Part shown: one piece after another, positions 816 through 55,706 of the stretch
How positions within the stretch are numbered: position 1 is the first letter of the stretch
Layout of the letters: every line of letters starts with the position of its first letter
Virus record (IMG/VR): IMGVR_UViG_3300042261_002385
Location: 310,001 to 374,000 of that record
Direction: 5' to 3' (one strand)
DNA: 64,000 nt
Program-made: the position numbers and the translations under genes
Notes under the pieces: model-generated
Seen by the model: only the letters and a program-made list of their open reading frames with translations
Database searches by the model: none
What the model was told of the DNA's origin: nothing

Positions 816-954
816 AAATAGATAAAAATGTTTATTTATATATTATTTTCAACAGTTGAAAAATGATAATAAAGACATTGACTTATTAATTTTCTGCTAA
901 TTAAAAATTGACCTAAACAAATTATGTCATATCCGATAAAATATAAATGAAACT

Positions 955-1407
955 TTGCGTTTCAATACTAAATTAAACAACGTAATGAACAAAGTAGATA
1001 AATTTCTAGAATTCTTCTTAGAACACATAGATGACCCAAGAATCTCAGTTTTCAAGAAAATGAAATATGGTCACAGATACTACTATATCAATTTTTATGT
1101 TGACGAAGACCCAACTTCTCAGAATAAACAAGCAGGAATTTTTCAATATAGAGACAATATGGAAATTGTCTTTGACAATAGAAATAATTGCATTGAGGTA
1201 TTCGGTGGTGAAGACAGTAACTCACTAATTATTGAGGATTTAGAATTACTTAAAAAGTGGTCTAATATATTAGAAGAAATAGTTTCTAAAAACCTGGAAG
1301 ATAGAGTAATAAATGTTTTTGAAAAAACTTTGAGCGAATGTTTTAATAAAAATCTACATAGAGAATTACAAATGAAAAAAATATTCAAACAAGATGAACG
1401 CTTATAA
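955..1407 (+). CDS. Hypothetical protein
   Basis: 150-aa ORF preceded by an AAC-N16-GATA promoter-like element; overlaps the next gene. The true start may be the ATG near 984. Confidence 0.7.
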   Translation: MRFNTKLNNVMNKVDKFLEFFLEHIDDPRISVFKKMKYGHRYYYINFYVDEDPTSQNKQAGIFQYRDNMEIVFDNRNNCIEVFGGEDSNSLIIEDLELLKKWSNILEEIVSKNLEDRVINVFEKTLSECFNKNLHRELQMKKIFKQDERL

Positions 1408-1888
1408 TCAGGAAGAAATTGATAGAATCAATAAAGTTAAAGATACTAATGATAAATTAGAAGAGTTTTTCAACGATAAAAGAGCAGAGTGGAATAAAAA
1501 TGTTGAGCCACTTTTCAAAATTATTCGTGTAGACTTGACAAATCCAACTTCTGCTAAAGACATTATGGAAGCTCAATCTTTAGCACTTTCCTATAGACAA
1601 GGTATTAACGAACAAATTAATTTCTTCTTAAATAAAAGAAGTAAAGAAACTACTAAAATTAAAAAACTAAGACAAGATAAGTTTATTTTTTACGCAACAG
1701 GATTCGGAGTCAAAACTAATTTAGGGGAAAAAGGAATTCTAATTGACGGACATTTGGCCGAAAATGACAGAAGTTTAGAACTCATCGAATCTTATATTGA
1801 ATTTCTAAGAGACACCGTTAAGAATTTAGAAAGCTTAAGTTACTCAATCAAAAATATGATTGAACTAATGAACTACTTAGGTCGTTAA
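1394..1888 (+). CDS. uvsY: UvsY-like recombination mediator protein
   Basis: Helical 164-aa protein with C-terminus IEFLRDTVKNLESLSYSIKNMIELMNYL resembling T4-like UvsY ends; T4-like replication context. Confidence 0.6.
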   Translation: MNAYNQEEIDRINKVKDTNDKLEEFFNDKRAEWNKNVEPLFKIIRVDLTNPTSAKDIMEAQSLALSYRQGINEQINFFLNKRSKETTKIKKLRQDKFIFYATGFGVKTNLGEKGILIDGHLAENDRSLELIESYIEFLRDTVKNLESLSYSIKNMIELMNYLGR

Positions 1889-3003
1889 TCAATCTTTTTA
1901 TTCCATTTAGTTTCGATTCCCATGTTTCTGAGAACTTGGTGACCACGAGAACAATCCATACATAACTGTTTATCACCATCGTAATCTTTAATAAGAATAT
2001 CACCATCACAGTCTTCACATCTTTCTCTATCACCATAAACACTATGTAAGTAGTAGCAATTTTTGTCAGATAAATTTGACAAACTATCTTTATCTTTACT
2101 TAAAAAACACATCGTATCTACATAAGGATAGTTTCTAAAATCGGCATCTAGTTTTAATTTTACTTCACCAGCGACCTCAGAACCTTTGTAAATAAAAATA
2201 ACATTTTCACCATCATGTGACGATGTTTTCTTTTTATAAAACCAACCTTCGTTATTAGCAAATTCCTTAAATCGATTTACATCTGAGTCACGATTGGTAT
2301 ATACTCTATCCATAAAATACTTAGACTCACAAGGAGACTTCTTTACTTTCCAAACCAAAGCCCTTCCGTGAATCTTATCATCACCATCTACATAAATAAG
2401 TAATTTAACTTTAGTTGGATTTTCTGTGTATATCTTAAATATTTTATTACTTTCTTCTCTCATACAAGAGCTTCCTAAAGTTCCAGTTTTACTGTAGTAT
2501 TTACCCTCATCATAATATTTTGCAATATCTTCTCCAGAAACTAGTTTAAATTGTATTGTAGAAATTTCTGAACTTGCTTTCCATGCATTTACAAAAGATT
2601 CTCTATCTGAATCAGAAATTGAAATATTTTTTAATTGACAAATGTAGTTTACAATTTTTCCGATTTTAACTTCTCCTCTTCCAGGCATAGTAAAAGGATA
2701 GTCTGGATTATCATAAACTTGATCTATTACAGTTTTGACCTTTGATTGATTAATAAAACTTACCATGTCTTCTGAATCAACTAAATCAAAGTAGTTTTGT
2801 TTTACTTTGCTATCTGAAAACCAATGTTGATTTTCAATGACATCTAAAATATGCTCAGCAATTTCAGAAACTTTACCAGATTGTTTAGTCAAAGATTTCA
2901 TCTTCATAATAAAATCAGTGGTAGCATAGATATGACCCTCTAAAAGAGAGAAGATTTCAAATTTTAATCTTTCAAGTAGAAAACCATCGTATCGAGTTAT
3001 CAT
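1885..3003 (-). CDS. Hypothetical protein, paralog of 60212..61669, with CTS-like N-terminus and two CxxC motifs
   Basis: Shares GxLGSSCM, GRALxW, DRxY and YPYxDT motifs with 60212..61669; starts MITRYDGFLLE; TAATATATA upstream. Confidence 0.8.
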   Translation of the reverse strand: MITRYDGFLLERLKFEIFSLLEGHIYATTDFIMKMKSLTKQSGKVSEIAEHILDVIENQHWFSDSKVKQNYFDLVDSEDMVSFINQSKVKTVIDQVYDNPDYPFTMPGRGEVKIGKIVNYICQLKNISISDSDRESFVNAWKASSEISTIQFKLVSGEDIAKYYDEGKYYSKTGTLGSSCMREESNKIFKIYTENPTKVKLLIYVDGDDKIHGRALVWKVKKSPCESKYFMDRVYTNRDSDVNRFKEFANNEGWFYKKKTSSHDGENVIFIYKGSEVAGEVKLKLDADFRNYPYVDTMCFLSKDKDSLSNLSDKNCYYLHSVYGDRERCEDCDGDILIKDYDGDKQLCMDCSRGHQVLRNMGIETKWNKKID

Positions 3004-3031
3004 ATAACCCTATATATTATTTTCAACAAAT

Positions 3032-3391
3032 ATGAAATTCAAATTAAAAGAGGACTGGATACACGAATCAACTTTTTTAGGTAAAACCGTAACAAAAAAG
3101 TTATATGACAAGGGACACATCTTTGAGCCAGAAAATGGAATTTATAAAATCATAGACCATACTGGAGGGATAATAGAATTAGATGAAAATCAAATGAGAA
3201 CTTTACCATCTGATAATTTTGAAGAAGTCATCGAAAAACAAGATGATTTTGAAATTATTATAGAAGAAATCCCAGATGACGATGATATTTTAGTAAGAAA
3301 CTGGAGAATTCAACTAGATGTAAAAACAACTAGAAAGAAACTAAAAGAAGTGCAAAGAATAATAGAAGAATACGTAAAACCAATTTTATAA
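3032..3391 (+). CDS. Hypothetical protein
   Basis: 119-aa ORF, 2 nt from the downstream aminotransferase (operon-like). Confidence 0.7.
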   Translation: MKFKLKEDWIHESTFLGKTVTKKLYDKGHIFEPENGIYKIIDHTGGIIELDENQMRTLPSDNFEEVIEKQDDFEIIIEEIPDDDDILVRNWRIQLDVKTTRKKLKEVQRIIEEYVKPIL

Positions 3392-3393: not shown

Positions 3394-4473
3394 ATGAACA
3401 TAAATTTTTCAGAAGTGACATTTTCGTCAATAGTAGAAATCGGAGAACTAGCTCAAAAACTTGAAAAAGAATCAGGTGACAAATACTTGAAACTACATAG
3501 AGGGGTCATGGACGTCACTACAATCGACTTAAATTCTTTTACCAAAGATATAGACTTTAATAGTAAATCTATTCAACAATACGGAGGCAATGACGGGGAT
3601 AACTCATTAATTGAAACGATTAAAGAAAAATTCAACCTAAATGATCACTATGTTATGACTGTTCCAGGTGGAATGGCAACTTTAGATTTAGTAATTAATT
3701 CACTGAGTGATGATACTTTTTGGGTTCCGAAATATCATTGGGGATCTTGGAATAAAATTCTTCAAACTCACAGAAAACAGATTAAAACTTTTGATGACTT
3801 CAATATCAGACAAGCAGAATGTGATGGTGGGGTAGTTATGTTGTGTTACCCTTCAAATCCAACCGGATTCAGTCCTAATTTTGAAGATTTAAAATATTTT
3901 GCTGATAAATGTAAAGAAAAAGAACAAACTTTAATCTTAGATTTACCATACTATTATCTTTTCAATGAAATGTCTGATAAAATCTATCAACTCTATTCCG
4001 ATAATGTAATCATATTATCATCTTTTTCTAAATCAGTTGGTTTGTCTGGATTAAGAATCGGATATATTGCCACTAAAAATCAAGAACTTTATAAAACCAT
4101 GAGAGTTAGGTCACTTTACAAATATAACTCTATATCCACTGTTCCTCAACAAATAATTAGTCAATTGTTTACTTCAAATAAAGGAAGAACGGCTTTTGAA
4201 AACTACAGAAGAAAAACACAAGCTCATATTAGAAAAAACATTGACTACTTAGCAAAAAGAGGTTTCCTATTTAGTGAATACACTTCAATTCCAACGGGAC
4301 CTTTTGCTATTATCAACAAAAACTTTGACGAACTTCTAAAAAACAGAATTACTAGCGTTCCACTTAATAAATTCACTTATAAAGATAGTGATGAAAATCT
4401 TAAAAACTATTCTAGAATTTCAGTATCAGTTGATAGTGATTTATTTCAAGAATATTTCGATAAACTTAAGTGA
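3394..4473 (+). CDS. PLP-dependent aminotransferase, class I/II fold
   Basis: PSNPTG, D-x-x-Y and SFSKSVGLSGLRIGY (PLP-binding lysine) motifs; C-terminal RIS. Confidence 0.88.
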   Translation: MNINFSEVTFSSIVEIGELAQKLEKESGDKYLKLHRGVMDVTTIDLNSFTKDIDFNSKSIQQYGGNDGDNSLIETIKEKFNLNDHYVMTVPGGMATLDLVINSLSDDTFWVPKYHWGSWNKILQTHRKQIKTFDDFNIRQAECDGGVVMLCYPSNPTGFSPNFEDLKYFADKCKEKEQTLILDLPYYYLFNEMSDKIYQLYSDNVIILSSFSKSVGLSGLRIGYIATKNQELYKTMRVRSLYKYNSISTVPQQIISQLFTSNKGRTAFENYRRKTQAHIRKNIDYLAKRGFLFSEYTSIPTGPFAIINKNFDELLKNRITSVPLNKFTYKDSDENLKNYSRISVSVDSDLFQEYFDKLK

Positions 4474-5738: not shown

Positions 5739-5802
5739 ATGGCTATATATTAAATCTAAATTGTGATAAAACAAAATTCTAATTTTGTAATATCATGAAA
5801 GT

Positions 5803-6576
5803 ATGGCTAATAAAATCAAATTTCAAATAAAACCTGATAAAATATCTCAATTTATTGAGACTTTAGAAGAATTGACCAGAATCGAAGATACAATTAAATT
5901 AAAAATTGACTCTGATAATATTCTTATGTATTCAATTTTAGGAGGAAACGTAATGTTAGCTTTCAAAAACTATCTAATCAACACCTCTGATTATTTTGTA
6001 GGCAATGAGTTCGACTTTACTCTTGATGTAATTATTGCAAATGCTAAAAAATTCGTAAAGAATTTAAACTTTTTAATGTCATCTGACAAAGTCACCATCG
6101 AATTCTCTTACAAAGAATCACCAGATGATGATGAAATTATGCATGCTCGTTCTATACAGGTTGTTGGTGGTAAACTTAAAGTCAATTGGTTAGCAGGTGA
6201 ACACTATCAACTTAGAGATATTAATAAAGTAGCACTAAAGAACAATTTGAATATTAAAAATAGAAAGTGGTCATTTAAAATTTCTCAATCAGATTTCTCA
6301 GATGTAAAAAAACTTTCAAATATTAATTCAGATAGAATTATAAATATCACTATAGATTCAGGAAAAGTCTTATTTTCTGAAAAGGCAGCTTGGGAATTGG
6401 AAATAGATTCCATAGAAGATGATAGAAATTCTAATCTAATGTTAAATAAGAAATTTTTAAGTTGTATAAGAGATGATAAAGATGTTGAATTTAGTATTTT
6501 TGACAATTTTATGTTAATTCAAGAAACTAACTCAAATTTAATGTTATCTTTTGAGCAAGATTTCTCCGATGATTAA
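5803..6576 (+). CDS. DNA polymerase sliding clamp (gp45/PCNA-like)
   Basis: 257 aa with a two-domain alternating beta/alpha pattern (F..I..L..I.DTIKLKID; F.ISQSDF..VKKL...I.ITID); located near the polymerase gene. Confidence 0.6.
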   Translation: MANKIKFQIKPDKISQFIETLEELTRIEDTIKLKIDSDNILMYSILGGNVMLAFKNYLINTSDYFVGNEFDFTLDVIIANAKKFVKNLNFLMSSDKVTIEFSYKESPDDDEIMHARSIQVVGGKLKVNWLAGEHYQLRDINKVALKNNLNIKNRKWSFKISQSDFSDVKKLSNINSDRIINITIDSGKVLFSEKAAWELEIDSIEDDRNSNLMLNKKFLSCIRDDKDVEFSIFDNFMLIQETNSNLMLSFEQDFSDD

Positions 6577-6966: not shown

Positions 6967-7506
6967 ATGAAGCAAAACAACTTTAGAAAAAGACCAGAAA
7001 TTAAAAGAAAACACAAAATTAATTCAGAACTTATTTTTCCAGAGGTAAGGTTAATCGGAAGAGGAGAGCCAATTGTTTTATCAATCAGAGAAGCTCAAAA
7101 AATTGCTAACGACGAAGAAAAGGATTTGATTCTTATAAACGAAAATCAAACACCACCTATTGTAAAAATAGAAAACTACAATAAGTTTTTATACGAATTA
7201 GAAAAGGCTGAAAAAGAAAAAAAGAGAAACTCTACTAAATCACAACTTAAAGAGATACAACTAAGTGTCAACATTTCTGACCATGATTTAGAAACTAAAT
7301 CAAAAAAAGGTAGAGAGTTTCTTAAAGATGGAGATAAAGTTAAAGTTGTAATATCACTCAAAGGTAGACAAAAAGCTAGTCCTGAAAGAGGAGAGCTTGT
7401 TATGTTAAAATTTGCACAATCAGTTGAAGAATTCGGAATACCAGAATCTTTACCAAAGTTAGAAAGTGGCAAATGGTTAATGATGATAAAGACTAAAAAG
7501 AAATAA
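6967..7506 (+). CDS. infC: Translation initiation factor IF-3
   Basis: INSELIFPEVRLI...PPIVKI..Y.KFLYE..K..K, KEIQL...I..HD...K.K....FL..GDKVKV...KGR: full-length IF3 N and C domains. Confidence 0.95.
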   Translation: MKQNNFRKRPEIKRKHKINSELIFPEVRLIGRGEPIVLSIREAQKIANDEEKDLILINENQTPPIVKIENYNKFLYELEKAEKEKKRNSTKSQLKEIQLSVNISDHDLETKSKKGREFLKDGDKVKVVISLKGRQKASPERGELVMLKFAQSVEEFGIPESLPKLESGKWLMMIKTKKK

Positions 7507-7508: not shown

Positions 7509-7536
7509 TAAACTTTTGTCATTAAAAGTCATAAAA
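7509..7536 (+). promoter_or_regulatory. Bipartite promoter (T/G/A)AAAC-N16-nATA (exemplar of 10 copies)
   Basis: TAAAC-ttttgtcattaaaagt-CATAAAA, 5 nt before the polB ATG; identical 16-nt spacing at nine other replication or metabolic loci. Confidence 0.72.
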
Positions 7537-7541
7537 TCTTT

Positions 7542-8975
7542 ATGACTAAAGAAGAAAAAATCAAAAAAGTAGAACTTCTTAAAAGAAAGGCTTCTGATTT
7601 AAAAAAAGAAGTTGATTATTACAACGCTCTTCAATTAGCGCTCAAATTAGTTCTAAATGGATCTTATGGAGCATTCGCTACCTCTTACTTTATTCTATAT
7701 AACAATCACGTTGCTGGAACCATTACCGCACAGGGTAGAGACTTAACCAGAACAATGGATAAAGTAAATGAAGACTACTGGTATAATCAATGGCACTTAG
7801 ACCACGAATTACATTTCAAACTTGGTATAAAAGATGTAACGAAAATAGGTAAAGAAGAGCCTGTATCAATATATGCAGATACCGATTCACTCTTCGTTTC
7901 ATTCAAACCCGCTATTGATCATTGTGTTTGGAAAAATCTTATTTTTGAAAAAAGTTATCTAAATTCATTAGATAAAAAATTTATTATACTTTCATCAGAA
8001 GACATTATCTGTAAAAACGATAATTGTATTGGAATAGCAAACGATATACACACATTAAAAAATCTAATCACACAAGACTACGAACTACTACTGTTTGATG
8101 GAAATTTTGTAAAAGATAGGTCACTAAATAAACTAATTGATGAAGGATTTTTTTCATCCGAGATTAGATGGAACTGGTCTAATGAACAAGACTTTATTCA
8201 CGGAGCAGACCACTTTAGATATGGACAATATTTTAAAGATTGTTTAGAAGAATATGCTAATTCTTTTGGTGTAGAAAATAAAGAAGACTTCGAGTTAGAA
8301 AGGATTTCAGAATCCATTATTAACATTGCTAAAAAGAAGTATATCTGTCATATCACATATGAAGATGGAATTCCTTTTGAAAGACTAAGTTATCTTTATC
8401 CTAAAGGAGTGGAATTGGTAAGGTCATCAACTCCAGCCTTTGCTAGAGAAAAAATTGTAAATATTGTAAAATATCTTTTTACAAATCCAGATACTTTTAA
8501 CATCAAAGATTTACTTAAACTAGTAAAACAACTTAGAAAAGAGTTTGAATTAGCAGACATTGATGATATCGCAATGCAATCATCCTGTTCAAACTATGAC
8601 GTAAAAGTCTTAAATGATAAAACACTTCCACTTCAATTTGTTTCCGGAGCACATTTTGCTGTAAAATCAGCTGCTCATTATAACTACTTACTTTCTAAAG
8701 ACAGAGAGATGCAACAAAAGTATGAGTTCATTAAATCAGGAACAAAAATAAAATACTATGTTTGTAAAGACAAATCAATAACTGATATGTTTGCCTACAT
8801 TAGAGGTTCATTTCCACACGAATTTGCACCACAGATCGATTATGATACTCAATTCGAAAAGTCTATCTTGTCTCCGATAAATTCAATTATTGAACCACTT
8901 GGTATGCCTGAGATTACAAAGAGACTATCAGTGGTTATGGATATCTTTTCTGGATTTGGAAAAGGTGGATTTTAA
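7542..8975 (+). CDS. Family-B DNA polymerase, C-terminal subunit of a split enzyme (fingers/palm/thumb)
   Basis: Motif B LALKLVLNGSYGAF, motif C YADTDS, KKKY, KGVELVRSS; no exonuclease domain or motif A; own promoter and start. Confidence 0.9.
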   Translation: MTKEEKIKKVELLKRKASDLKKEVDYYNALQLALKLVLNGSYGAFATSYFILYNNHVAGTITAQGRDLTRTMDKVNEDYWYNQWHLDHELHFKLGIKDVTKIGKEEPVSIYADTDSLFVSFKPAIDHCVWKNLIFEKSYLNSLDKKFIILSSEDIICKNDNCIGIANDIHTLKNLITQDYELLLFDGNFVKDRSLNKLIDEGFFSSEIRWNWSNEQDFIHGADHFRYGQYFKDCLEEYANSFGVENKEDFELERISESIINIAKKKYICHITYEDGIPFERLSYLYPKGVELVRSSTPAFAREKIVNIVKYLFTNPDTFNIKDLLKLVKQLRKEFELADIDDIAMQSSCSNYDVKVLNDKTLPLQFVSGAHFAVKSAAHYNYLLSKDREMQQKYEFIKSGTKIKYYVCKDKSITDMFAYIRGSFPHEFAPQIDYDTQFEKSILSPINSIIEPLGMPEITKRLSVVMDIFSGFGKGGF

Positions 8976-16373: not shown

Positions 16374-16475
16374 ATTTTATAATATTTTTTTAGTTATATA
16401 TTAAAATCTAAAATTGCTTTTAGTTGAAACTTTTACCACATTATCACATAAAAATTGAAATTAAAAATTTTTTTT

Positions 16476-44103: not shown

Positions 44104-44113
44104 AACTCTTTAT

Positions 44114-44938: not shown

Positions 44939-44976
44939 ACAATTATATGTATGATGTATCTAAAAGTTAGAAAATA

Positions 44977-45414: not shown

Positions 45415-46005
45415 ATGAAGTATATTGCTACTTATGAAAATTTTAATTATCAGCCAACTAACGAAGAGTTTATTGGTCTATTCAGCGCAAAAACTAGAAA
45501 TCAATACATCAAACAAGGTTTTGATAACGCAACTAAACTAATTGAGAGTGATAAAAATCTTCAAGATAAAATCATGAAAGCCTATGAATCACAATCTGCA
45601 AAACCTTCAGTTGAAGAAATGAAAGATGCGGTAGACATCGTAAGTGGAAGTGACGAAGCTCAAGTTCAAAGTTTAGAAAAAGAATTAAAAGCTGATCCTG
45701 TTACAAGTGGAGAAGCCCAGAATGAATCAACTGCCGAACCAAAGACTTTCATTCAGAAAGCTTTAGGAATTGTAAGTAAAATCTGGAAATTCGGAGTTAA
45801 TGTGGTTCATTTCATGGGAGCTTTAGCAATGATTCTTTTACCATTCACTTCGAAATTAGGAGCAACTGTAATTACATCAGGTGAAGCATCTGGAAATACA
45901 TCACTTTCTTGGTATGGTGGATTATTATTAGTTGGTGGTATTCTTTCAATGATGTATTTCATCTATAGAAGAGTAGCAGCTGCAGAAGATAAAAGAAATG
46001 CGTAA
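45415..46005 (+). CDS. Membrane protein with CTS-like N-terminus
   Basis: Starts MKYIATYENF; two C-terminal TM helices. Confidence 0.72.
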   Translation: MKYIATYENFNYQPTNEEFIGLFSAKTRNQYIKQGFDNATKLIESDKNLQDKIMKAYESQSAKPSVEEMKDAVDIVSGSDEAQVQSLEKELKADPVTSGEAQNESTAEPKTFIQKALGIVSKIWKFGVNVVHFMGALAMILLPFTSKLGATVITSGEASGNTSLSWYGGLLLVGGILSMMYFIYRRVAAAEDKRNA

Positions 46006-46026
46006 AAAGTAAAAAAATTATATTCT

Positions 46027-46058
46027 TAAGGAGAGACTTTTGTTTCTCCTTTTTTTTT
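46027..46058 (+). terminator. Intrinsic terminator
   Basis: AAGGAGA-GACTTTTGTT-TCTCCTT followed by a T-run. Confidence 0.65.
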
Positions 46059-46167
46059 GAAAAAAAATTCAAAAAAAGACAAAACAAAGTTATTTTTTCC
46101 GATATATACATACAGTGTGAAATTATTTTTGAACAGATTCATTTCTGTATCAAAAAAAAAATTTCTA

Positions 46168-47004
46168 ATGAGAAACACAAAAACTTACAATGAGCTCGTT
46201 CAAAAGATGCGAGCATTTTTTTTGCAAAAAGGATTTATTGAAGTCCCAACACAATCAAGATTATCAATCTTAGCAGCATGTGAAAATCCACATTCAATTA
46301 CAACATTTAACTATTCGGGTGAAGTTTGGCCACTTCCACAAACCGGTCAAATGTGGTTAGAACACGAACTATTAAAAAATCCAGAATGGCCTGGTTGTTT
46401 CTGTATATCAACTTCTTACAGACAAGAGAAAACTCCAATTCCAGGACGACATGAGTTAATTTTTCCTATGTTTGAGTTTGAATCAAAAGGTGGTATGAAA
46501 GAACTACTTAAGTTAGAATCTGAACTATTAGAACATTTAGGATTTGACCAACCAGTTGAAGTCAACTATAATGATGTTTGTGAAGAATACGGTGGTGTAT
46601 CTATTTTAGAAGATGAACACGAAAGTAGAATGTGGAAAGAAAAAGGTTCTGTAGTGTCACTTCAAAATTTTCCAAGAAGAACAAATCCTTTCTGGAATAT
46701 GCAACACAATAATGGTGAAATCTTTAACAAAGTAGATGTTATTCTTTATGGTCAAGAAACAATCGGTTCGGCTGAAAGAAGCTGTGATGTTGATAAAATG
46801 AAAGAAATGTTTTATACAATTGAAGAAGGCAGATATTCACAAAAACTTTTTGAATTATTCGGAAAAGAAAGAGTTGAATCTGAACTAGAAGTGTTTTTAC
46901 AATATGAATTCTTTCCACGTTTTGGAGGAGGAATTGGTATGACAAGATTAGCAAGAGCTTATGAAATGATGTTACAAGAAAAGAAAGTAGAGGAGTTAGT
47001 ATAA
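46168..47004 (+). CDS. Class II aaRS (Asp/Asn/Lys) catalytic-domain protein lacking the anticodon domain; AsnRS2/asparagine-synthetase-like
   Basis: Motif 1 RAFFLQKGFIEV, motif 2 SYRQE...RH...FPMFEFE, motif 3 GGGIGMTRL; no N-terminal OB domain; start 46168. Confidence 0.75.
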   Translation: MRNTKTYNELVQKMRAFFLQKGFIEVPTQSRLSILAACENPHSITTFNYSGEVWPLPQTGQMWLEHELLKNPEWPGCFCISTSYRQEKTPIPGRHELIFPMFEFESKGGMKELLKLESELLEHLGFDQPVEVNYNDVCEEYGGVSILEDEHESRMWKEKGSVVSLQNFPRRTNPFWNMQHNNGEIFNKVDVILYGQETIGSAERSCDVDKMKEMFYTIEEGRYSQKLFELFGKERVESELEVFLQYEFFPRFGGGIGMTRLARAYEMMLQEKKVEELV

Positions 47005-47027
47005 TTGTAGATAATATAATTGTAGTT

Positions 47028-47055
47028 AAGGGAAGTTAAAAGCTTCCCTTTTTTT
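47028..47055 (+). terminator. Intrinsic terminator
   Basis: AAGGGAAG-TTAAAAG-CTTCCCTT followed by a T-run. Confidence 0.75.
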
Positions 47056-47103
47056 ATTAAACATTTTTTTTATTTTAACATAAAATAATTAAATTAATTT
47101 AAA

Positions 47104-47706
47104 GTGGTGATTATAGTCGATGGTGTAGTTGGTGCTGGAAAAAGCACTCTTTCTGAAAAAATAAGTAAAACTCTTAACATTCCTGTTTTTTATGAGTTAC
47201 AAAATCAAACTACGATGAATCTTTTAGAAGATTTCTATAGAGATAAAAGTAGATGGTCATTTGCACTTCAGATACATTTTCTAAACGAAAGATTTAGAAT
47301 GATAAAAGAAATACATAAAAACGGTAGTGGTATATTAGACCGTTCTATTTTCGGAGACAGAATTTTTGCACAAATGCTAAATGAAGATGGTTGGATGACA
47401 GACGATGAATTTGACACTTATTCAACTCTACTTAACAATATGTTGGAACACGCTAAAAAACCAGATTTACTTGTTTATATAGACTGTGATTTAGAGACCG
47501 CAATGTCCAGAATAAATAAAAGAGGTCGAGAAATGGAACAAAGAGTCGATGAAATTTACTGGAAAAGACTCAACGATAAATATACAAGTTGGTATAATTC
47601 ATATGATATATCAGACAAAATTTCTATTGATGCCACATCATACCATCCTGATGATGAATCTGAAATACAAAAAATCTGTAACAAAATTCTAGAATTCACT
47701 ACTTAA
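47104..47706 (+). CDS. Deoxynucleoside kinase (dAK/dGK family)
   Basis: DGVVGAGKST P-loop, LQIHFLNERF, DRSIFGD, RINKRGREME. Confidence 0.92.
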   Translation: MVIIVDGVVGAGKSTLSEKISKTLNIPVFYELQNQTTMNLLEDFYRDKSRWSFALQIHFLNERFRMIKEIHKNGSGILDRSIFGDRIFAQMLNEDGWMTDDEFDTYSTLLNNMLEHAKKPDLLVYIDCDLETAMSRINKRGREMEQRVDEIYWKRLNDKYTSWYNSYDISDKISIDATSYHPDDESEIQKICNKILEFTT

Positions 47707-47716
47707 TATATAATAA

Positions 47717-48370
47717 GTGAAACATCTTAGAAAATTTTTTGAATCAATAGACTACACTAAAGAAGAGATTTTAGAAAATTTTCTGTTTATATCTGATAAA
47801 TTTGGAGAACCAGAAATCCACTCCTCTAAATACGGACAATCTCAAAAATGGATAATCAATTGGGACATAAGATTAGACCTTTCTGTTTTACAAGAAGCTG
47901 AAAATTTAATAAACAAATTAAAAGATTTAGTTGAAGATATTGATGATGTTTTAGCAGCTACATCGAGATTGGAGGACTTTAATATCAATATGAGTCTAAC
48001 CAATAAACTTAGACTCGAGCTAGTTCCTAAAGACACAGGAGATACTAATTACAAATTTATTGATAGATTTGAATCAAGAGCTCTTTATGTGAGAATAAAT
48101 GAGATTGAGAGATTCTTCAACGCTAAAGGATTAAGAATAGAAAAGTGGGATAATGAAAGCTCCTATAATGAATATAATCAAACTAATGAGTTAGAGATTG
48201 TATTGAATAAAAGAGACAACGAGGTCACGCATGAATTCTATAGATTAATTATGGCAGAACTAAATGAGTTTAGAGACGACAGAGATTATCAAGTAAGGTC
48301 TCAAGGTCATAGCACCATAGTGATATATCCTGATGAAGAAAAATCTTGGATCGAAGTAACAAGTAATTAA
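47717..48370 (+). CDS. Hypothetical protein with CTS-like N-terminus
   Basis: GTG start, MKHLRKFFES; TAATATATA upstream. Confidence 0.75.
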   Translation: MKHLRKFFESIDYTKEEILENFLFISDKFGEPEIHSSKYGQSQKWIINWDIRLDLSVLQEAENLINKLKDLVEDIDDVLAATSRLEDFNINMSLTNKLRLELVPKDTGDTNYKFIDRFESRALYVRINEIERFFNAKGLRIEKWDNESSYNEYNQTNELEIVLNKRDNEVTHEFYRLIMAELNEFRDDRDYQVRSQGHSTIVIYPDEEKSWIEVTSN

Positions 48371-48565
48371 TTATCTTACTTGACTTTTTATTATTTCAAC
48401 CGTCTCATTCTGAAATCCCTCAAATAAATTTTTACGGTCTAAAGTAAATCTTGAAACACCTAAAGTATTTGCGTTGTGAAAAGAATATAACTTTCCTAAA
48501 TTGACAAAGTGTTCAATTCTTCCAGTTAATTTCCATCTTACACAAATAACAGTTTGACTTCTCAT
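48371..48565 (-). CDS. Small hypothetical protein
   Basis: 64-aa ORF filling the gap downstream of the phosphoesterase. Confidence 0.5.
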   Translation of the reverse strand: MRSQTVICVRWKLTGRIEHFVNLGKLYSFHNANTLGVSRFTLDRKNLFEGFQNETVEIIKSQVR

Positions 48566-48592
48566 TTCTTATTTTTTAAAAAGAAGAGAGAG

Positions 48593-49354
48593 TTAATCTC
48601 TCTCTTCCCATAACTCATTTACGTTCAGTAACCGATGTTTGATACCATCATAATTCATTTCATAACTTTTATGAAAATGTCCATAATAATTATGAGTGAT
48701 ATTATTGTTCATTTTTAGAATAGTAAAAGCATCAGTAACTTGCTGTCTCTCTACAAGTAAATCTGTTTTAAGTTTGGTATCACCACTTTCTCTAACAATT
48801 TTTTCAACGAAAGGACCAAAACCAAAAGTGTTATCGGGTTCGCAGTAGTGAGGAGCAGTATGAGTGACAACTATATCAATATTTCTCATTTCACCTAACT
48901 TGTCTCTATCTAAAATAAATGCTTCGTCTGGCCACCAACTTTCACGACCCAAAGTTTGATTTTCAAAAATTCCTAATTTTTGTTCTTTAGTATAACGCCA
49001 AGTTCTATCAACACTGACAGCACCTCCGATACATAGAATTCTTTTATCACAGAGTTCTAAAACTGTGTAATCAGGTATTAGGTGAATGTTACTAAAACCA
49101 AAAGGATCGTTGTCAAAGTGAGGCTTATAATCATGATTTCCACGAATAGCCCAAATATGAACATTGTTCTTTACTAATTGAGTATGATACATTTCAAGAA
49201 GTCTCTTTTCTTTTTCTAAAGTTTGAAATCCAACTCCGAAGTCACCAACTTGAATTATATGAGCATTTTCAATACCATACAACTTAAGATATTGATGTAT
49301 GATAGCAAAATGACCGTGAATATCACCGAGAAACATTAATCTCATATTTTTCAT
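48593..49354 (-). CDS. Calcineurin-like metallophosphoesterase
   Basis: GDIHG, GDFG, RGNHD, THTAP, GHFH. Confidence 0.92.
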   Translation of the reverse strand: MKNMRLMFLGDIHGHFAIIHQYLKLYGIENAHIIQVGDFGVGFQTLEKEKRLLEMYHTQLVKNNVHIWAIRGNHDYKPHFDNDPFGFSNIHLIPDYTVLELCDKRILCIGGAVSVDRTWRYTKEQKLGIFENQTLGRESWWPDEAFILDRDKLGEMRNIDIVVTHTAPHYCEPDNTFGFGPFVEKIVRESGDTKLKTDLLVERQQVTDAFTILKMNNNITHNYYGHFHKSYEMNYDGIKHRLLNVNELWEERD

Positions 49355-49482
49355 AATTACAAATTTAGTAAAAAAAATTCAGATTCGCAAAATTATTATA
49401 GTTATATCATGATGTTACATGAATTTTTGTGTTATTTCAACAATTTTGGTAAATATTATATAATTTTTTATATATAAGTTAT

Positions 49483-50049
49483 ATGAAAACCATGAAAAAC
49501 TTCCAATCCTTCAATGAAGGATTTGGCAAAATCACCAATTACCTTAAGGGATTAATTAAACGAGGAGGAGACTTTGCATCAGAAGTTTGGTTAGTTACTA
49601 AAAGAGAAAGTCAGGAAACAAAAATTGCTGTTGAAATACTCGGAAGAATGCTAAAAGGAGAAGAAGTTTCAGATTCTGAAAAAAAATTTGTAAAAAAACA
49701 ATCAGGTGACATTGTTAGAATTCTTCCATTAGTTGCTATATCTGGTCTTCCGATACCTCTTCCGATTACACCATTATTAATAATACTGGGTAAAAAATAT
49801 GGTTTTGATTTCTTACCGAGAGACCATAGAGGTATGCTAAAAAATTATGTAGAATTACCTGAAGACTTAAAATCTCAATTATTGAACTCACCAGAATCTG
49901 GCATGGGATTTCATATTGTAGATATACTTTTAAAAAACGGAAGATTTTTAAAAGAAAGGACTGTAATAAATTCAAGTCAGTTATTATTAAACGTTGATGA
50001 AGAAATCACAACTGAAGATATAGATGAAATTTTTACATCTGAGTTTTAG
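49483..50049 (+). CDS. Hypothetical two-domain protein (LETM1-like N-terminal region) with CTS-like start
   Basis: EVSDSEKKFVKKQSGDIVRILPLVAISGLPIPLPITPLL; starts MKTMKNFQSFNEG. Confidence 0.55.
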   Translation: MKTMKNFQSFNEGFGKITNYLKGLIKRGGDFASEVWLVTKRESQETKIAVEILGRMLKGEEVSDSEKKFVKKQSGDIVRILPLVAISGLPIPLPITPLLIILGKKYGFDFLPRDHRGMLKNYVELPEDLKSQLLNSPESGMGFHIVDILLKNGRFLKERTVINSSQLLLNVDEEITTEDIDEIFTSEF

Positions 50050-50057
50050 AATAGAAA

Positions 50058-50597
50058 TCAGATGTTAAGTATTTTTTGAATAACTTTCGGAAAGTATTCT
50101 TTTTCCAGTTCTTTAATTTTAATTTGAAGGCTCTCCGGTGTGTCTGAGTCACTAACATCACATTTAAACTGACTAATTATTTCACCTTTGTCGTATTCGG
50201 AATTAACCCAATGTATCGTTATACCACTTTCTGATTCTCTGGATTCAATCACCGATTTGTGAACATTTAATCCCCACATACCTTTACCACCAAATTTTGG
50301 AAGTAGTGATGGGTGTATGTTTATAGTTTTAAATTCAAGTAAGAATTCATTTGGAACTTGCTTAAGAAATCCGGCAAGAACTACTAAATCTGGTTTATAC
50401 TCTTTTACAATATTGATTAGACTTTTCCAACTAACAAAAATTGTATGGTCTATTTCATTTTCAAAAGCGACTTGACAAGCGCCACACTCTTTATCAGTAA
50501 CAATAAAACTTACTTTTACATCAGTGTCTTTAAAATAATTGATTATGTTTTGAGCATTAGTTCCTTGACCGGATGCCATTATACAGATACTAGCCAT
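50058..50597 (-). CDS. purN: Phosphoribosylglycinamide formyltransferase
   Basis: ASGQGTNAQ, LAGFLK, INIHPSLLPKFGG.G, GITIHWV...DKGEII; start 50597. Confidence 0.9.
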   Translation of the reverse strand: MASICIMASGQGTNAQNIINYFKDTDVKVSFIVTDKECGACQVAFENEIDHTIFVSWKSLINIVKEYKPDLVVLAGFLKQVPNEFLLEFKTINIHPSLLPKFGGKGMWGLNVHKSVIESRESESGITIHWVNSEYDKGEIISQFKCDVSDSDTPESLQIKIKELEKEYFPKVIQKILNI

Positions 50598-50808
50598 TAT
50601 AGACTTCAAATCGTTTTTTACCATCTACTTCTTCATTCCAAGATGTAAGTGGTCTTGCATAATAAGAACCAAAAAGAACAGACTTATAAATCACAAGAAG
50701 TTCACCACTCTCGCTATGAGGTGCCATAAATAAAAATTCATAAATACCGCCTTTATAATGTTTATAAAGGCGACCAGGTGCTGGATAATTTATCATACTT
50801 GGTTCCAT
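50590..50808 (-). CDS. DUF1653-family protein
   Basis: YKHYKGGIYE...A.HSE.GE.LVIY...YARP...W......KRF. Confidence 0.85.
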   Translation of the reverse strand: MEPSMINYPAPGRLYKHYKGGIYEFLFMAPHSESGELLVIYKSVLFGSYYARPLTSWNEEVDGKKRFEVYNG

Positions 50809-50823
50809 ATTATTTTATTTTAA

Positions 50824-51255
50824 TTATTTACTCATTAAGTATTCAACGACTTGTGACCAAGTCATAAATTTTTCATCCTTACCAAAAAAGATATGCTCTC
50901 CTTCAAATTCAGTTTGACCGTGACGGTAGTCATCATCAATAAGATAATCACCTTTAACTAAAGACTTGTCTGGACAAAGTATAAGTTTAAATAACATATC
51001 TTCACCAAAATATTTTTTAATCCATTCAGCTTTTTCAGTATAACAATGTGTGTTTTTAATTGAAGGTCTTGTAAGAATCCAAACATCATATTTTGTCATA
51101 AGAGTATTCATTCCTTCAATAGCACCTTCTATTGGTTCTAAATCTAAGAAGAAACCTACTTTAGAATGCGGATATTTTAATTTATATTCACCGGTTTTGA
51201 ATGGAGTGATAAAATCACATAGTGTATCATCCATATCTACATATACTCTTTTCAT
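50824..51255 (-). CDS. 5'(3')-deoxyribonucleotidase (NT5C, HAD)
   Basis: VYVDMDDTLCDF, EK.EWI..YF, DKSLV.GDYLIDD; start 51255. Confidence 0.9.
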   Translation of the reverse strand: MKRVYVDMDDTLCDFITPFKTGEYKLKYPHSKVGFFLDLEPIEGAIEGMNTLMTKYDVWILTRPSIKNTHCYTEKAEWIKKYFGEDMLFKLILCPDKSLVKGDYLIDDDYRHGQTEFEGEHIFFGKDEKFMTWSQVVEYLMSK

Positions 51256-51272
51256 AGTATAAATATACAAAA

Positions 51273-51476
51273 TTATTTTAAAAGTTGAGATATTTTTTCT
51301 CGTCTTTTCCCATTTATCCAATTATGAAATCTATCAACACTTACAACTTCACCTTTACCACTATCGAATTGTAAATCTATCCAGTTACTAACAATTTTAT
51401 AAGATATAACTTTTATTGATGACTTATATCTTAAATCTTCTTGTGTGAATTCGGTGAGTTTTTCTAAAGTAATCAC
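51273..51476 (-). CDS. Small hypothetical protein ending RREKISQLLK
   Basis: 67-aa ORF with GTGA overlap; recurrent C-terminal motif. Confidence 0.6.
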   Translation of the reverse strand: MITLEKLTEFTQEDLRYKSSIKVISYKIVSNWIDLQFDSGKGEVVSVDRFHNWINGKRREKISQLLK

Positions 51477-51811
51477 TTGATTATATTTTGTATTTTTTCC
51501 TCTCTATTTCTTGAAATCAATTCAGCATTAAAAGGTATCAAATTTTCATCAAAATTATACTTATAAATTTTTCCATTGTCTTGCCAAACAACATAAGAAG
51601 AAAAAGATACCTTATTTCCGAGATAATCTACTCCGGTAAATGCTTCTTTGTGAAGACTTTTTCCAAGCCCATCTCTTTTAAGTTCGATTTCCGATATTAT
51701 ACCTAAAAGTTGATCAAAATCAACATTAATTTCTATAATCTCTTCCCCTGTGGTTGATATATAATCACCCGATTTTAGAAATTTAACCTTTAATATTTTT
51801 TCTATTTCCAT
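51473..51811 (-). CDS. Hypothetical protein ending REEKIQNIIK
   Basis: 112-aa ORF directly after purA. Confidence 0.7.
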   Translation of the reverse strand: MEIEKILKVKFLKSGDYISTTGEEIIEINVDFDQLLGIISEIELKRDGLGKSLHKEAFTGVDYLGNKVSFSSYVVWQDNGKIYKYNFDENLIPFNAELISRNREEKIQNIIK

Positions 51812-51812
51812 A

Positions 51813-53099
<1,287 letters not shown>

Positions 53100-53111
53100 T
53101 TATTTAAATTT

Positions 53112-53612
53112 TTATTGATTGAAAAGTTGTTCTAGATTGTTATCTCTAATAATTCCGGATTCTTGTAAGACAGTTGATAATATATCAGTAAAATTTTCTC
53201 TGTTTATTTCAATTAGTCTTTGTTTAATAGTGTCAATTAATTCATCGAACATCTGAGTGTCTTGGTAATAAGACCTTTTATGGTAAGCATAATTAAATGA
53301 AAAACCTTCTTTATTAACAGTAATCTCTAAGTAATTATCATCGTTATAAAGAGTATTTTTCTGTCGTTTTTTAATATTTGTTATATCTGGTATAGAAATA
53401 GAAAATTCATCGTCTGTAAAAGTAATTCTCAATCCTTCATTATAACAAATTAGACTCAAAATCAACTGTTTAGTTTTTTCTGAGACTTCAGAATCATAAA
53501 GTGAGTATTCTGGTTTTTCTCTCATAACTACTTCAGATTTCTGAAGCATACTCACCTCGTTATAAATTATTTGAGCTATTTTCTGAAGTTTTTTAGTTTT
53601 CTTCTTTTTCAT
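53112..53612 (-). CDS. Hypothetical protein ending IRDNNLEQLF
   Basis: First gene of the purA operon; AAC-N16-TATA promoter. Confidence 0.7.
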   Translation of the reverse strand: MKKKKTKKLQKIAQIIYNEVSMLQKSEVVMREKPEYSLYDSEVSEKTKQLILSLICYNEGLRITFTDDEFSISIPDITNIKKRQKNTLYNDDNYLEITVNKEGFSFNYAYHKRSYYQDTQMFDELIDTIKQRLIEINRENFTDILSTVLQESGIIRDNNLEQLFNQ

Positions 53613-53683
53613 ACAAATTATTGTATAGATTATAAATTAATTTGTTTAATTAATTTTGACAACAGATTTTTATATATACTATT

Positions 53684-54694
53684 ATGATTAGTAGATATAA
53701 TGAATTCCTTTTAGAAAAAGAGTTTAATCTTATAGTAGATGATATTTTTCGTTTAGTTGAATCTGAAGGTGTTTGGACAAGTCCAAATACTATTGAATGG
53801 GATATGACTAAAAAAGAAGAACCTCAAACAAGTAAGGATTGGGTTGATAGAACAATTGAAAGGCTTTCAAAATTTGTTAAGAGTTTGAGTAAAGAAAAAG
53901 CTAGAGAGTATTTTGTAAAATTACTCAACAAACTTAAACCACTTCCTGAATTAACCAGAAGATATTTAATTACACATTATACAAGTGTCTTCTTGACAGT
54001 GGCTTCTTTAGCTTTTCTATTCAGTTATCAAGATGACACTAGTGTGTCTCAAGATCCGACTCAAACGGTTAAAGTAGAAAAGGTTGAGAAAATAGATCCT
54101 CAAATTGAACAAGAAGTAGTTGAGTTAACTAAGAAATCATCTTTTGAAGAAGCCCAGAATTCTGTTAAAGAAGTAGAGGCTGGTTTTTCAGATGACAGAG
54201 GAGATAGCGGTAACTATATTGAAGTAACTGGTGGAAAAAGATTTTTAGGAACAAATCATGGAATTTCCGCTCCGGTTTTACAAAAATGGATGCAAGACCA
54301 AGGTATAAAGAGACTTCCAACAAAAGAAGATATGATGAATCTTTCTTATAAAACAGCACTTGAAATCTATAAAAAAGACTACTGGGATGCGCAAAAACTT
54401 ACCGATTTGTGTAATCAAAATGTAGCTAATATTGTTTATGATGGGTGTGTCAACCAAGGTATTGATGCTATGAATGAAATAATCACAAATGCTCTTTCTG
54501 AACAAGGTGTCAAAGTAAAAGGGTGGTGTTTTACTAATAAAGGAATTTCTAAAATGAATTCTTGTAATCAACAACAACTTTTTGATTCTATTAAAAAGGG
54601 AAGAGAATCAAGGTATAAACAAGCTCCTACCTGGTCAAGACATGGTGAAGGTTGGATGAATAGATTAAATTCAATAGAATTTGTTCAAGCATGA
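53684..54694 (+). CDS. GH108-family muramidase with CTS-like N-terminus and internal hydrophobic segment
   Basis: EAGFSDDRGDSGN...GTNHGIS, A.EIYKKDYWD, DG.VNQG, GWMNR; starts MISRYNEFLLE. Confidence 0.8.
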   Translation: MISRYNEFLLEKEFNLIVDDIFRLVESEGVWTSPNTIEWDMTKKEEPQTSKDWVDRTIERLSKFVKSLSKEKAREYFVKLLNKLKPLPELTRRYLITHYTSVFLTVASLAFLFSYQDDTSVSQDPTQTVKVEKVEKIDPQIEQEVVELTKKSSFEEAQNSVKEVEAGFSDDRGDSGNYIEVTGGKRFLGTNHGISAPVLQKWMQDQGIKRLPTKEDMMNLSYKTALEIYKKDYWDAQKLTDLCNQNVANIVYDGCVNQGIDAMNEIITNALSEQGVKVKGWCFTNKGISKMNSCNQQQLFDSIKKGRESRYKQAPTWSRHGEGWMNRLNSIEFVQA

Positions 54695-55662
54695 AACACT
54701 TAAACTCATATAAAGTATTTGAATCAGTTGAAGAAATCAGTTCGATAGTTGATGATTATATAAAAGACTGTAAATGGGATATACAAAACTCACTCGGTAA
54801 TTGTGCATTTTTTGCTAAAGATTTTTATGAATGGTGTCAATCAAAAGAGTATGATTGCAAACTTATCTATTTAAAACAAGATGAAGATTTTATAGTAGGC
54901 GATGAAATAGAAGACCACATTGCTCCTATGATTGATGAACAACTAATAGACTTTGTTTATACTCCAATTGGTGTTTCTAAGAGAGTGAGACAAAACTCAG
55001 CAAATGCTATCAAAAGACAGTTATATCCAGAAATAACTCAAAAAAACAATATTGTTGAAAAATATGGACACTGGGGATATAACACAATTGAAGAAGTTAG
55101 TTATGAAGAAGCGTACCAGGGAAACAATCCAAAATGCACAACAATTGATTATCCAAATAGGTTAAATGAAACTATAAAAGTCCCAATTGAAGTCGGTGAT
55201 ACCGTTTTAGGTGGGAGATTTAAAAATAAAAAGATGATTGTGAAGAAAATCGGAAAGAACAAAAAAGGAGATATTACCATAAATGATAAACCACTTCTTA
55301 AATTTAGATTAGTTAAAGAAAATTTACAAGAAGAGGTTGATTACTATTTCAGACATCTAGAGGATGATAATTTTTTATTTCAAGTAGAAGTTGATTATTT
55401 TAGAATATTTAAACCAATAAATGAATCGGTATATTCATATTCAAATTGTAAACCATTTCAATGGTCCGAAATTTCTGGTGAAATATCAAGATATGTGATT
55501 GAATTGGATGATAGTGAAACCAGCGAAAAGTCGATTGATTATTCTTATGTTGTAAGAAAAATAGGCGATGTAGCTAGTAGAACACAAATACCGACACAGA
55601 TGTTATTAGATGAAAATTTTGATTGTGGTGAAATTTTGAGTTTTACAATTGGTTTTAGATAA
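54691..55662 (+). CDS. Multi-module hypothetical protein with CTS-like start and a possible Cys-His-Asp domain
   Basis: MKHLNSYKVFES; GNCAFFA...DHIAP...IDF; basic middle module; acidic last module. Confidence 0.65.
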   Translation: MKHLNSYKVFESVEEISSIVDDYIKDCKWDIQNSLGNCAFFAKDFYEWCQSKEYDCKLIYLKQDEDFIVGDEIEDHIAPMIDEQLIDFVYTPIGVSKRVRQNSANAIKRQLYPEITQKNNIVEKYGHWGYNTIEEVSYEEAYQGNNPKCTTIDYPNRLNETIKVPIEVGDTVLGGRFKNKKMIVKKIGKNKKGDITINDKPLLKFRLVKENLQEEVDYYFRHLEDDNFLFQVEVDYFRIFKPINESVYSYSNCKPFQWSEISGEISRYVIELDDSETSEKSIDYSYVVRKIGDVASRTQIPTQMLLDENFDCGEILSFTIGFR

Positions 55663-55706
55663 ACTTTTTTTTTATAAGTAAATATAATATCCAAATAAAT
55701 CAGAAT

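Follow-up and report, generated by a model that had tools for sequence, protein, structure and literature searches.

The middle promoters of phage T4 combine a MotA box at -30 with a sigma70 -10 box and operate together with AsiA. Late sigma factors of the T4 gp55 type have no region 4 and do not need a -35 box. In the Bacillus phage SPO1, host sigmaA is followed by gp28 and then by gp33/34. Among bacterial alternative sigma factors, SigW of Bacillus subtilis has a promoter whose full form is TGAAAC-N16-CGTA. The element described here, termed class 2, lies in a window of 64,000 nucleotides (nt) that comprises bases 310,001-374,000 of a single virus record (IMGVR_UViG_3300042261_002385; 436,265 bp, 31% G+C). 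Its refined form is (t)AAAC(tttt)-N16/17-ATA(T)AA. It is very probably a real and conserved promoter class, and it is probably read by a phage-encoded sigma factor of the extracytoplasmic function (ECF) type as the middle class of the transcription program, as judged from the sequence.

ECF promoters possess a conserved -35 AAC, often followed by a T-tract (tgaAACnTTTt), a spacer of 16-18 nt and a -10 box that is specific to the ECF group, and autoregulation is frequent (PMC5758882, PMC7776599). The boxes of the SigW promoter are TGAAAC and CGTA (PMC5758882). Class 2 resembles the promoters of B. subtilis sigmaW and other ECF sigmas in the AAC core of the -35 box, the frequently preceding A, the T-tract, the spacer of 16-17 nt and the presence of such a promoter before the sigma gene itself (PMC5758882, PMC7776599). 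In contrast, the -10 box of the phage is nATA(T)AA rather than CGTA or CGTC. Moreover, the candidate sigma is encoded by the phage, and its predicted regulon consists of phage replication and metabolic genes plus a late sigma gene instead of genes for envelope stress. No anti-sigma partner was identified for it.

Several phages provide further points of comparison. In SPO1, an early phage sigma reads middle promoters, and the late sigma gene or genes are among the middle genes (PMC13401047). The phage studied here would share with SPO1 a three-step cascade that leads from an early phage sigma through middle promoters to a late sigma gene, but the sigma families and the motifs differ, the late factor being T4 gp55-like and the middle factor ECF-type. 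As with the middle promoters of T4, class 2 precedes genes for replication and nucleotide metabolism as well as gene 55, and its upstream element is centred near -30. Unlike T4, the phage would use a complete extra sigma instead of sigma appropriation, and its genome contains no match to MotA or AsiA. In phiEco32 and phage 7-11, a phage sigma that drives middle and late genes redirects the host RNA polymerase, as proposed here, and the sigma gene has both host-type and phage-specific promoters (PMC4331800). However, these ~77-kb enterobacterial podoviruses have single-element promoters (TAATGTATA) without a spaced -35 box, and they do not possess a gp55-type late sigma as an additional factor.

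Sigma factors are known in jumbo phages that have T4-like core genes, both RpoD-like versions and gp55-type versions described as minimal sigmas (PMC7824862), and huge phages with sigma70 and AsiA-like proteins have been reported (PMC7162821). Phage ECF-like sigmas were explicitly excluded from the ECF classification (PMC7826278). The literature searched records that huge phages encode sigma factors and links no motif to one. It describes neither promoter classes for this clade nor an ECF-type middle-gene sigma in phages that bear gp55.

Class-2 sites and the genes downstream

The original prediction listed ten sites in the window as AAC-N16-nATA. All ten are present as AAC, 16 nt and nATA (equivalent to AAC-N17-ATA), at coordinates 2 nt away from those first given. 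The AAC starts are 916, 5770, 7511, 16428, 47060 and 55662 on the plus strand and 41778, 44968, 51286 and 53646 on the minus strand. With the weight matrix described below, eight of the ten score 11.4-18.4 bits, the site at 53646 is marginal (9.4 bits) and that at 5770 is weak (5.5 bits). Together with added candidates, the sites and the open reading frames (ORFs) that they precede, with lengths in amino acids (aa), are as follows.

916..941, plus strand: class-2 promoter AAC-N17-ATAAAA, 15.6 bits; ATA ends 46 nt 5' of ATG 985 of a 140-aa ORF
2982..3007, plus strand: added candidate (AACCATCGTATCGAGTTATCATATAA, spacer 17) before ORF 3032-3391 and an aminotransferase gene, 3394-4473 (Aminotran_1_2 E 1.5e-25)
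5770..5792, plus strand: doubtful member before ORF 5803-6576, 5.5 bits; AAC-N17-ATA, but the -10 region is AATATC
7511..7536, plus strand: class-2 promoter AAACTTTT-N-CATAAAA, 17.3 bits; ATA ends 8 nt before the ATG of polB (7542-8975)
16428..16453, plus strand: class-2 promoter before clpP (16476-17138; CLP_protease E 1e-64), 18.4 bits
41753..41778, minus strand: class-2 promoter before the 225-aa ORF 41068-41745, 11.4 bits
44943..44968, minus strand: class-2 promoter, 12.0 bits; ATA ends 7 nt before the ATG of peptide deformylase (def, 44375-44938; Pep_deformylase E 1.3e-47)
47060..47085, plus strand: class-2 promoter before deoxynucleoside kinase (dNK, GTG 47104 to 47706), 15.4 bits
49439..49463, plus strand: added candidate with the shorter spacer N16 (AACAATTTTGGTAAATATTATATAA) before ORF 49483-50049
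51261..51286, minus strand: class-2 promoter, 15.6 bits; ATA ends 8 nt before ATG 51255 of an NT5C-type 5'-nucleotidase (50824-51255; NT5C E 8.4e-14)
53621..53646, minus strand: marginal site, 9.4 bits, before the 166-aa ORF 53112-53612 and then purA, 51813-53099 (Adenylsucc_synt E 7e-172)
55662..55687, plus strand: class-2 promoter before the 75-aa ORF 55707-55934 and rpiB, 55924-56373, 16.7 bits
59612..59634, plus strand: added candidate (AACTTTTTATATGATTTGATATA) before ORF 59659-59883, 13.6 bits

The gene names polB (DNA_pol_B E 3.5e-20), clpP, dNK (E 3.5e-54, with the match beginning at residue 3 of the GTG-started ORF), def, nucleotidase, purA and rpiB (RpiB NF004051, 180 bits against a cut-off of 135) were borne out by family matches. 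The assignment of uvsY stands only in part, as the gene that follows the 140-aa ORF (1394-1888) has a weak UvsY-like match (Pfam E 0.0015; phrog_231 E 5e-5). The clamp proposed at 5803-6576 was left unconfirmed, with no hit in Pfam, PHROGs or NCBIfam. In the same collections, ORFs 41068-41745, 53112-53612 and 55707-55934 have no significant family hits. The site at 5770 was also considered as a host-type promoter (TTG-N19/20-TAnnTTTG) and rejected: it contains TAATTTTG, but by eye the nearest TTG is 16 nt back, compared with the usual 19-20.

Within the window, class-2 sites thus precede polB, clpP, dNK, def and the NT5C nucleotidase, as well as ORFs that are followed by purA, rpiB and the weakly UvsY-like gene. 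Elsewhere in the genome they precede genes for a gp32-like single-stranded DNA-binding protein, a DnaB-like helicase, a DEAD_2 helicase, a gp44-like clamp loader, thymidylate synthase (thyA) and Fpg. Others encode a ClpB/C-like ATPase, an epimerase, a glycosyltransferase, a QueC-like protein and an S1-domain protein. Judged by these families, the class was correctly described as lying in front of replication and metabolic genes.

Enrichment and spacing of the motif

One alternative to a promoter class is that the pattern is a functionless chance product of AT-rich intergenic sequence. In its favor, and against a promoter class, the degenerate pattern occurs 74 times in the whole window, compared with 65.8±8.1 in shuffled sequence, which is chance level, and one or two of the ten listed sites have weak scores. 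The whole-window count is uninformative, however, because the signal is positional. Thus, 17 of the 74 matches fall in the 80 nt of sense strand before a start codon, where 3.6 would be expected for a zone of 4.9% of the sequence.

The analysis was extended to the genome by a simple ORF call made for this work, which yielded 518 ORFs at 93% coverage; the calls are crude, and the GTG start of dNK was corrected by hand. AAC-N17-ATA is found 54 times at -60..-1 of the 518 ORFs, compared with 20.6±4.6 in dinucleotide shuffles made from the same AT-rich upstream regions (z 7.3) and with 18 on the antisense strand. For AAC-N17-ATAnAA, the corresponding counts are 30 and 4.2±2.0 (z 12.8). The comparison with shuffled AT-rich upstream sequence, which the original prediction had named as its check, therefore gave clear enrichment. 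When AAC-N-ATAnAA is sorted by spacer across the genome, 23 sites have N16, 35 have N17 and ~8 are found at other spacers. The spacing of exactly 16 nt between AAC and nATA is right for the ten sites and too strict for the genome as a whole, because a second population has one nucleotide less. In addition, a blind scan of all combinations of two 3-mers and a gap returned AAC-18-TAT and AAC-17-ATA among its top signals.

The iterated weight matrix has the form (t)AAAC(t/c/a)T...ATA(t/a)AA. Within the genome, 36 of its 41 hits of at least 13 bits are inside upstream sense zones (4.7% of the sequence), a figure that is in part circular, since upstream sites served to train the matrix. The AAC is fixed, and the preceding base is A in at least 60% of the sites in four genomes. 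The fraction of T at +1..+4 after AAC is 0.37-0.57, compared with a background of 0.35. The -10 consensus, nATA(T)AA, contains neither CG nor TTTG, and the base before ATA may be G, T, C or A. Because the enrichment is specific to upstream position, strand and spacing, and the element is conserved in relatives, the tests already contradict an origin by chance, which is very improbable indeed.

Conservation in related phages

Five related virus records were taken whole for comparison with this genome (G000): G001 (465 kb), G002 (483 kb), G003 (271 kb), G004 (249 kb) and G005 (242 kb). Peaks at N16/N17 are present in G001 (30/26 vs ~7 at other spacers), G002 (29/25 vs ~10) and G003 (20/17 vs ~4), and weak peaks are present in G004 and G005. 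Because the regions upstream of polB and gp55 in G005 are near-identical to those of G002, this record is apparently a piece of a G002-like genome. G004 may be a partial genome as well.

Upstream of polB, both boxes are kept in the same register in 11 distinct relatives with protein identities of 55-85%, and the spacer between them has diverged. In these relatives, AAAC(T)TT is mostly at -31 from the ATG and ATAwAA mostly 8 nt before it. Conservation was also examined at the level of operons, for which every gene was assigned the class of the closest promoter upstream of it within a run of genes on one strand. Class-2 status defined in this way is kept between orthologues in G001 (odds ratio 5.7, p 2e-5), G003 (odds ratio 3.6, p 0.017) and G004 (odds ratio 8.2, p 0.0015).

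Other relatives have no class-2 site before polB (L038, L047, L058, L060, L063, L074, L077 and L078). They possess instead a conserved hairpin-like element, ATAAGTCCCnnTTAGGAC, positioned downstream of inverted TATATATTAAA. The polB ORF of the window encodes a protein of only 477 aa, in which the best match to the Pfam model DNA_pol_B (453 positions) is limited to profile positions 137-237. The enzyme therefore appears to be split or truncated, with the exonuclease part encoded separately. In relatives L068-L070, the region of the polB match is ~500 nt longer.

Source phage and host

The polB fragment of the window shares 76% protein identity with two huge phages (642 and 635 kb), both uncultured. 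More distant kin are found in Lak phages and in phages of Flavobacterium, Chryseobacterium and Tenacibaculum. A megablast comparison of 20 kb of the phage with phage GenBank records returned zero matches. DNA of the phage was detected across many metagenomes from lakes, reservoirs and drinking water. The phage has a T4-like core (gp32, UvsW/UvsY, gp44 and gp55).

Shine-Dalgarno sequences are missing from the phage genes, and 24 sites of the form TTG-N19/20-TAnnTTTG(TA) are located upstream of genes in the genome, before small genes. A blind, spacing-specific search for two blocks returned TTG-N24-TTGTA, which corresponds to the Bacteroidota sigmaA promoter TTG-N19/20-TAnnTTTG. Based on these two features of the sequence, the host is almost certainly a member of the Bacteroidota and not a Firmicute. 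A Bacteroidota host has also been predicted in print for the largest phages of the clade (PMC7162821). The host-type promoters point to an early gene class, and the following are in the window.

14572-14604: host-type promoter
45336-45367: host-type promoter
49360-49391: host-type promoter

Class 2 itself was rejected as a Bacteroidota sigmaA promoter, for which the register is -33 TTTG / -7 TAnnTTTG (PMC9723704), since it is missing TTTG and the separate set of 24 sites exists.

Sigma factors and the reader of class 2

A search of the genome for sigma factors, suggested with the original prediction, revealed three sigma-type proteins, all encoded outside the window. The first is a 274-aa RpoD/RpoS-like protein with regions 1.2, 2, 3 and 4. 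The second is a 199-aa ECF-type protein with Sigma70_r2 (55 bits) and Sigma70_r4_2 (37 bits) and without r1 and r3. The third is a 121-aa gp55-like late sigma (phrog_234). No homologue of the multisubunit RNA polymerase beta subunit was found in the genome, and a search for T7-type polymerases had no match there or in the control genomes and is therefore uninformative.

The ECF-type protein scores 74 bits against TIGR02937, where the cut-off is 42.9, and its best families are Sig70_bacteroi1 and SigW. Its nearest solved structure is that of SigW (5wuq, E 6e-15, full-length alignment). Because it is below every equivalog cut-off, including that of SigW, it belongs outside all named ECF groups. 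In its length of ~200 aa, its possession of sigma2 and sigma4 only and its score above the family cut-off, the protein nevertheless conforms to an ECF sigma. Class 2 in turn shares three features with ECF promoters, namely AAC with a T-tract, a spacing peak confined to N16/N17 in G000-G003 and a copy of the motif upstream of the ECF gene itself. The strongest link is provided by the sequences in front of the ECF and gp55-like genes. In G000, G001 and G003, the copy before the ECF gene, AAC-N17/18-TATAA, is located 73-124 nt upstream, and it is also present in G002. It was found in 10 of 11 further contigs with an orthologue (54-94% identity), or 14 of 15 in total; as a base rate, the stricter form with AAAC precedes 8% of genes. 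The same motif precedes the gp55-like gene in 6/6 genomes (p 3e-7; G002 and G005 are not independent), where a terminator-like hairpin is located before it. ECF orthologues are encoded in all four genomes with a strong spacing peak. A host-type promoter heads the ECF-containing operon in G000 and is directly upstream of the ECF gene in G001.

These observations, together with the enrichment and the set of downstream genes, support the earlier proposal of a middle regulon read by a phage alternative sigma with an ECF-like promoter layout. In the proposed mechanism, the class-2 sites would be delayed-early/middle promoters, in which a -35-like box, (t)AAAC with a T-rich stretch, is separated by 16-17 nt from a -10-like box, ATA(T)AA. 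They would be read by the host RNA polymerase core carrying the 199-aa ECF-type sigma. The ECF gene would be expressed from host-type promoters (TTG-N19/20-TAnnTTTG), and its product would then reinforce its own gene through the class-2 promoter. It would also turn on the genes for replication, nucleotide metabolism and auxiliary functions as well as the gp55-like late sigma gene. Finally, the gp55-like sigma would read the abundant TTTAATATATA promoters before the structural genes. A three-step cascade of this kind is the most economical model.

The likeness to sigK promoters that had also been noted was not upheld, as there is no conserved C before ATA and no sigE/K-type sigma in the genome. 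A Bacillus sigmaK/sigmaE reading (AC-N16/17-CATAnnnTA) was rejected because the base before ATA varies, the sole sigma with region 3 is RpoD/RpoS-like and absent from G003, and the probable host is a member of the Bacteroidota rather than a Firmicute.

The 274-aa RpoD/RpoS-like sigma could be the reader instead, with TATAA as a sigma70-type -10 box and nnAACn as a variant -35 box. The -10 box resembles TATAAT, the spacing of xxAACx-N16/17-TATAA is of the sigma70 type, and the phage does encode such a sigma. Its gene has a somewhat looser host-type promoter, so the protein would be made early. This sigma is poorly conserved, however: the G000 and G001 proteins share 29% identity, and none was found in G003 despite the strong class-2 peak in that genome. 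A copy of a Bacteroidota-type primary sigma should moreover recognize the TTG/TAnnTTTG class, also present in the genome, and the class-2 promoter before the ECF gene would be left unexplained. For these reasons, recognition by the RpoD-like protein seems rather unlikely.

Alternatively, the host RNA polymerase could act with a host sigma, either primary or alternative (a host ECF, for example), and a phage activator bound to the AAAC box, in a manner similar to MotA/AsiA of T4. In sites with a tight register, the centre of the AAAC box lies at ~-30 from the ATG, like that of the MotA box, and G004 and G005 possess some class-2 sites with no ECF sigma found there. On the other hand, the genome has no match to PF09114 or PF09010 (MotA/AsiA) at E up to 1, the -10 box is without the TTTG required by Bacteroidota sigmaA (PMC9723704), and a phage ECF sigma with matching promoter architecture and its own class-2 promoter exists. 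An activator working with a host sigma is accordingly judged unlikely. The lack of a MotA or AsiA match also led to the rejection of class 2 as a T4 middle promoter operating by sigma appropriation.

In the leader of the ECF gene (G000:82657-82720), the box (T)TAACGGCAA(T/A) is repeated, with one copy directly adjoining the ATG, and the boxes are conserved in L183, L184, L188, L192, L193 and G002. G003 has three AATAGCA(C) repeats instead, in the leader of the ECF gene as well as in that of the gp55-like gene. The leader repeats may be a translational operator of the sigma genes. The ECF orthologue of G003 (G003:68723-69583) has 286 aa, with an insertion of ~85 aa inside the sigma4 region.

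Class 1 and its probable role in late transcription

The dominant promoter-like motif of the genome, termed class 1, is TTTAATATATA(A) and is found upstream of 133/518 genes. Its position is bimodal, with AATATATA starting at -12/-13 from the ATG or at -25..-33. Examples in the window are as follows.

19215-19227: class-1 motif
25737-25750: class-1 motif
31500-31512: class-1 motif
37074-37087: class-1 motif

Genes preceded by TTTAATATATA only include those for the large terminase, portal and prohead protease and, in the window, large ORFs of the tail and baseplate region. The gp55-like sigma probably reads class 1 as the late promoters. Class 2 was rejected as a T4-type late promoter, since it needs AAC at a fixed spacing and precedes replication and metabolic genes; TTTAATATATA fits that role instead.

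It is conceivable that the gp55-like sigma reads both classes, with the AAC box serving either as a dispensable upstream element or as a binding site for an accessory protein. In tight-register genes, the distance between ATATA and the ATG is equal for the two classes, and ~20 genes, including the gp55-like gene, carry both motifs. However, the AAC box is strictly spaced, and sigmas of the gp55 type lack region 4 and can do without a -35 box. Furthermore, the -10 boxes differ, as class 2 has A rather than T after ATATA and is without the upstream TTTA, and the gene sets are those of replication and metabolism as opposed to terminase, portal and protease. A reader common to the two classes is therefore quite improbable.

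Several findings weigh against an ECF sigma as the reader of a distinct middle class. The gene for the large subunit of ribonucleotide reductase has a class-1 motif, and the promoter classes are thus not cleanly split by function. The class-2 -10 box resembles the class-1 -10 core, and it is ATA(T)AA rather than the CGT type usual for SigW-like ECF sigmas; since ECF -10 boxes are group-specific, the latter difference sets class 2 apart from the SigW-like groups and is compatible with an ECF reader. Some class-2 sites, among them that of the gp55-like gene, are present in G004 and G005 without a detectable ECF orthologue, which is weak evidence either way because both records are ~245 kb and G005 appears to be a G002-like fragment. 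The class-2 promoter of the ECF gene could also mean that this gene is a passive member of the regulon, with another factor as the reader. When orthologues are compared gene by gene, conservation is modest in G001 (7/23, p 0.011) and not significant in G003 and G004; the operon-level test is the more appropriate of the two. Lastly, public RNA runs gave sparse metatranscriptome contigs inside genes and none over a promoter or the 5' end of a gene. The gp32-like gene and relatives are present in freshwater RNA libraries. Both the start-site positions and the middle timing of class 2 are inferred from sequence.

Register to the start codon and predicted leaderless mRNAs

In 16 of 59 matrix sites, the distance from the end of ATA to the ATG is exactly 8 nt, and in several others it is 7 or 9 nt. 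This places the AAC peak of G000 at -31/-30 from the ATG, with a similar peak in G001 and G004 and a weaker one in G002 and G003. The other classes are also placed tightly. In class 1, AATATATA starts at -12 or -13 in 45 genes, with a hard edge, and in 14 genes the G of the host-type TAnnTTTG is 3-5 nt (mostly 4) before the ATG. Including 30 genes of class 2, ~89/518 genes have a promoter box in tight register with the ATG. Examples in the window are as follows.

7533-7544: tight register
44936-44946: tight register
51253-51264: tight register

In Flavobacterium psychrophilum, TAnnTTTG is at -12..-5 from mapped start sites (PMC9723704). Based on this placement, the tight register predicts transcripts that start at the A of the ATG. 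In the 8-nt sites, put at ~40% of class 2, ATA would be at -11..-9 of a leaderless mRNA. Leaderless mRNAs have been reported for F. psychrophilum at 5.5%, and the arrangement in the phage predicts a rate far above that of this flavobacterium. A full-length translation initiation factor IF3 (IF3_N and IF3_C) is encoded at 6967-7506 on the plus strand, directly upstream of polB.

Other features of the window

The structural module at 22000-36000 has a G+C content of 0.34-0.36, compared with 0.28-0.31 in the remaining window. It encodes a CHAP domain in 22521-25712, a gp5/VgrG-like OB domain in 29213-31486 and a VanY peptidase domain in 31786-34008. The region from 41000 to 56400 is a dense block of host-like auxiliary genes, which encode the following.

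42424-42840: FKBP-type peptidyl-prolyl isomerase
46057-47004: class II aminoacyl-tRNA synthetase-like protein
50058-50624: PurN-like formyltransferase
53684-54694: GH108 lysozyme-like protein

The deformylase, dNK, NT5C, purA and rpiB genes described above are part of this block, as is a metallophosphoesterase gene.

Implications

The result bears on the transcription programs of uncultured huge phages, including those of the kin of the 630-735 kb Mahaphage genomes predicted to infect Bacteroidetes. Tying a promoter class to a phage ECF sigma would provide a readable early/middle/late regulatory map for hundreds of genes that are annotated without a function, and it would allow temporal classes to be predicted in metagenomic phages from sequence alone. 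The pair of sigma and promoter may also be of use as an orthogonal system for the genetics of Bacteroidota. In phages that retain gp55-type late transcription, such a sigma would be an alternative to the MotA/AsiA solution of T4. The tight register of promoter and ATG predicts that leaderless mRNAs are widespread, in a phylum without Shine-Dalgarno sequences. More tentatively, and with less than even confidence, a family of huge phages of freshwater Bacteroidota may combine a three-step sigma cascade, in which an ECF sigma replaces MotA/AsiA, with a phage-specific and largely leaderless form of translation initiation that is coupled to the promoters and served by the phage's own IF3.

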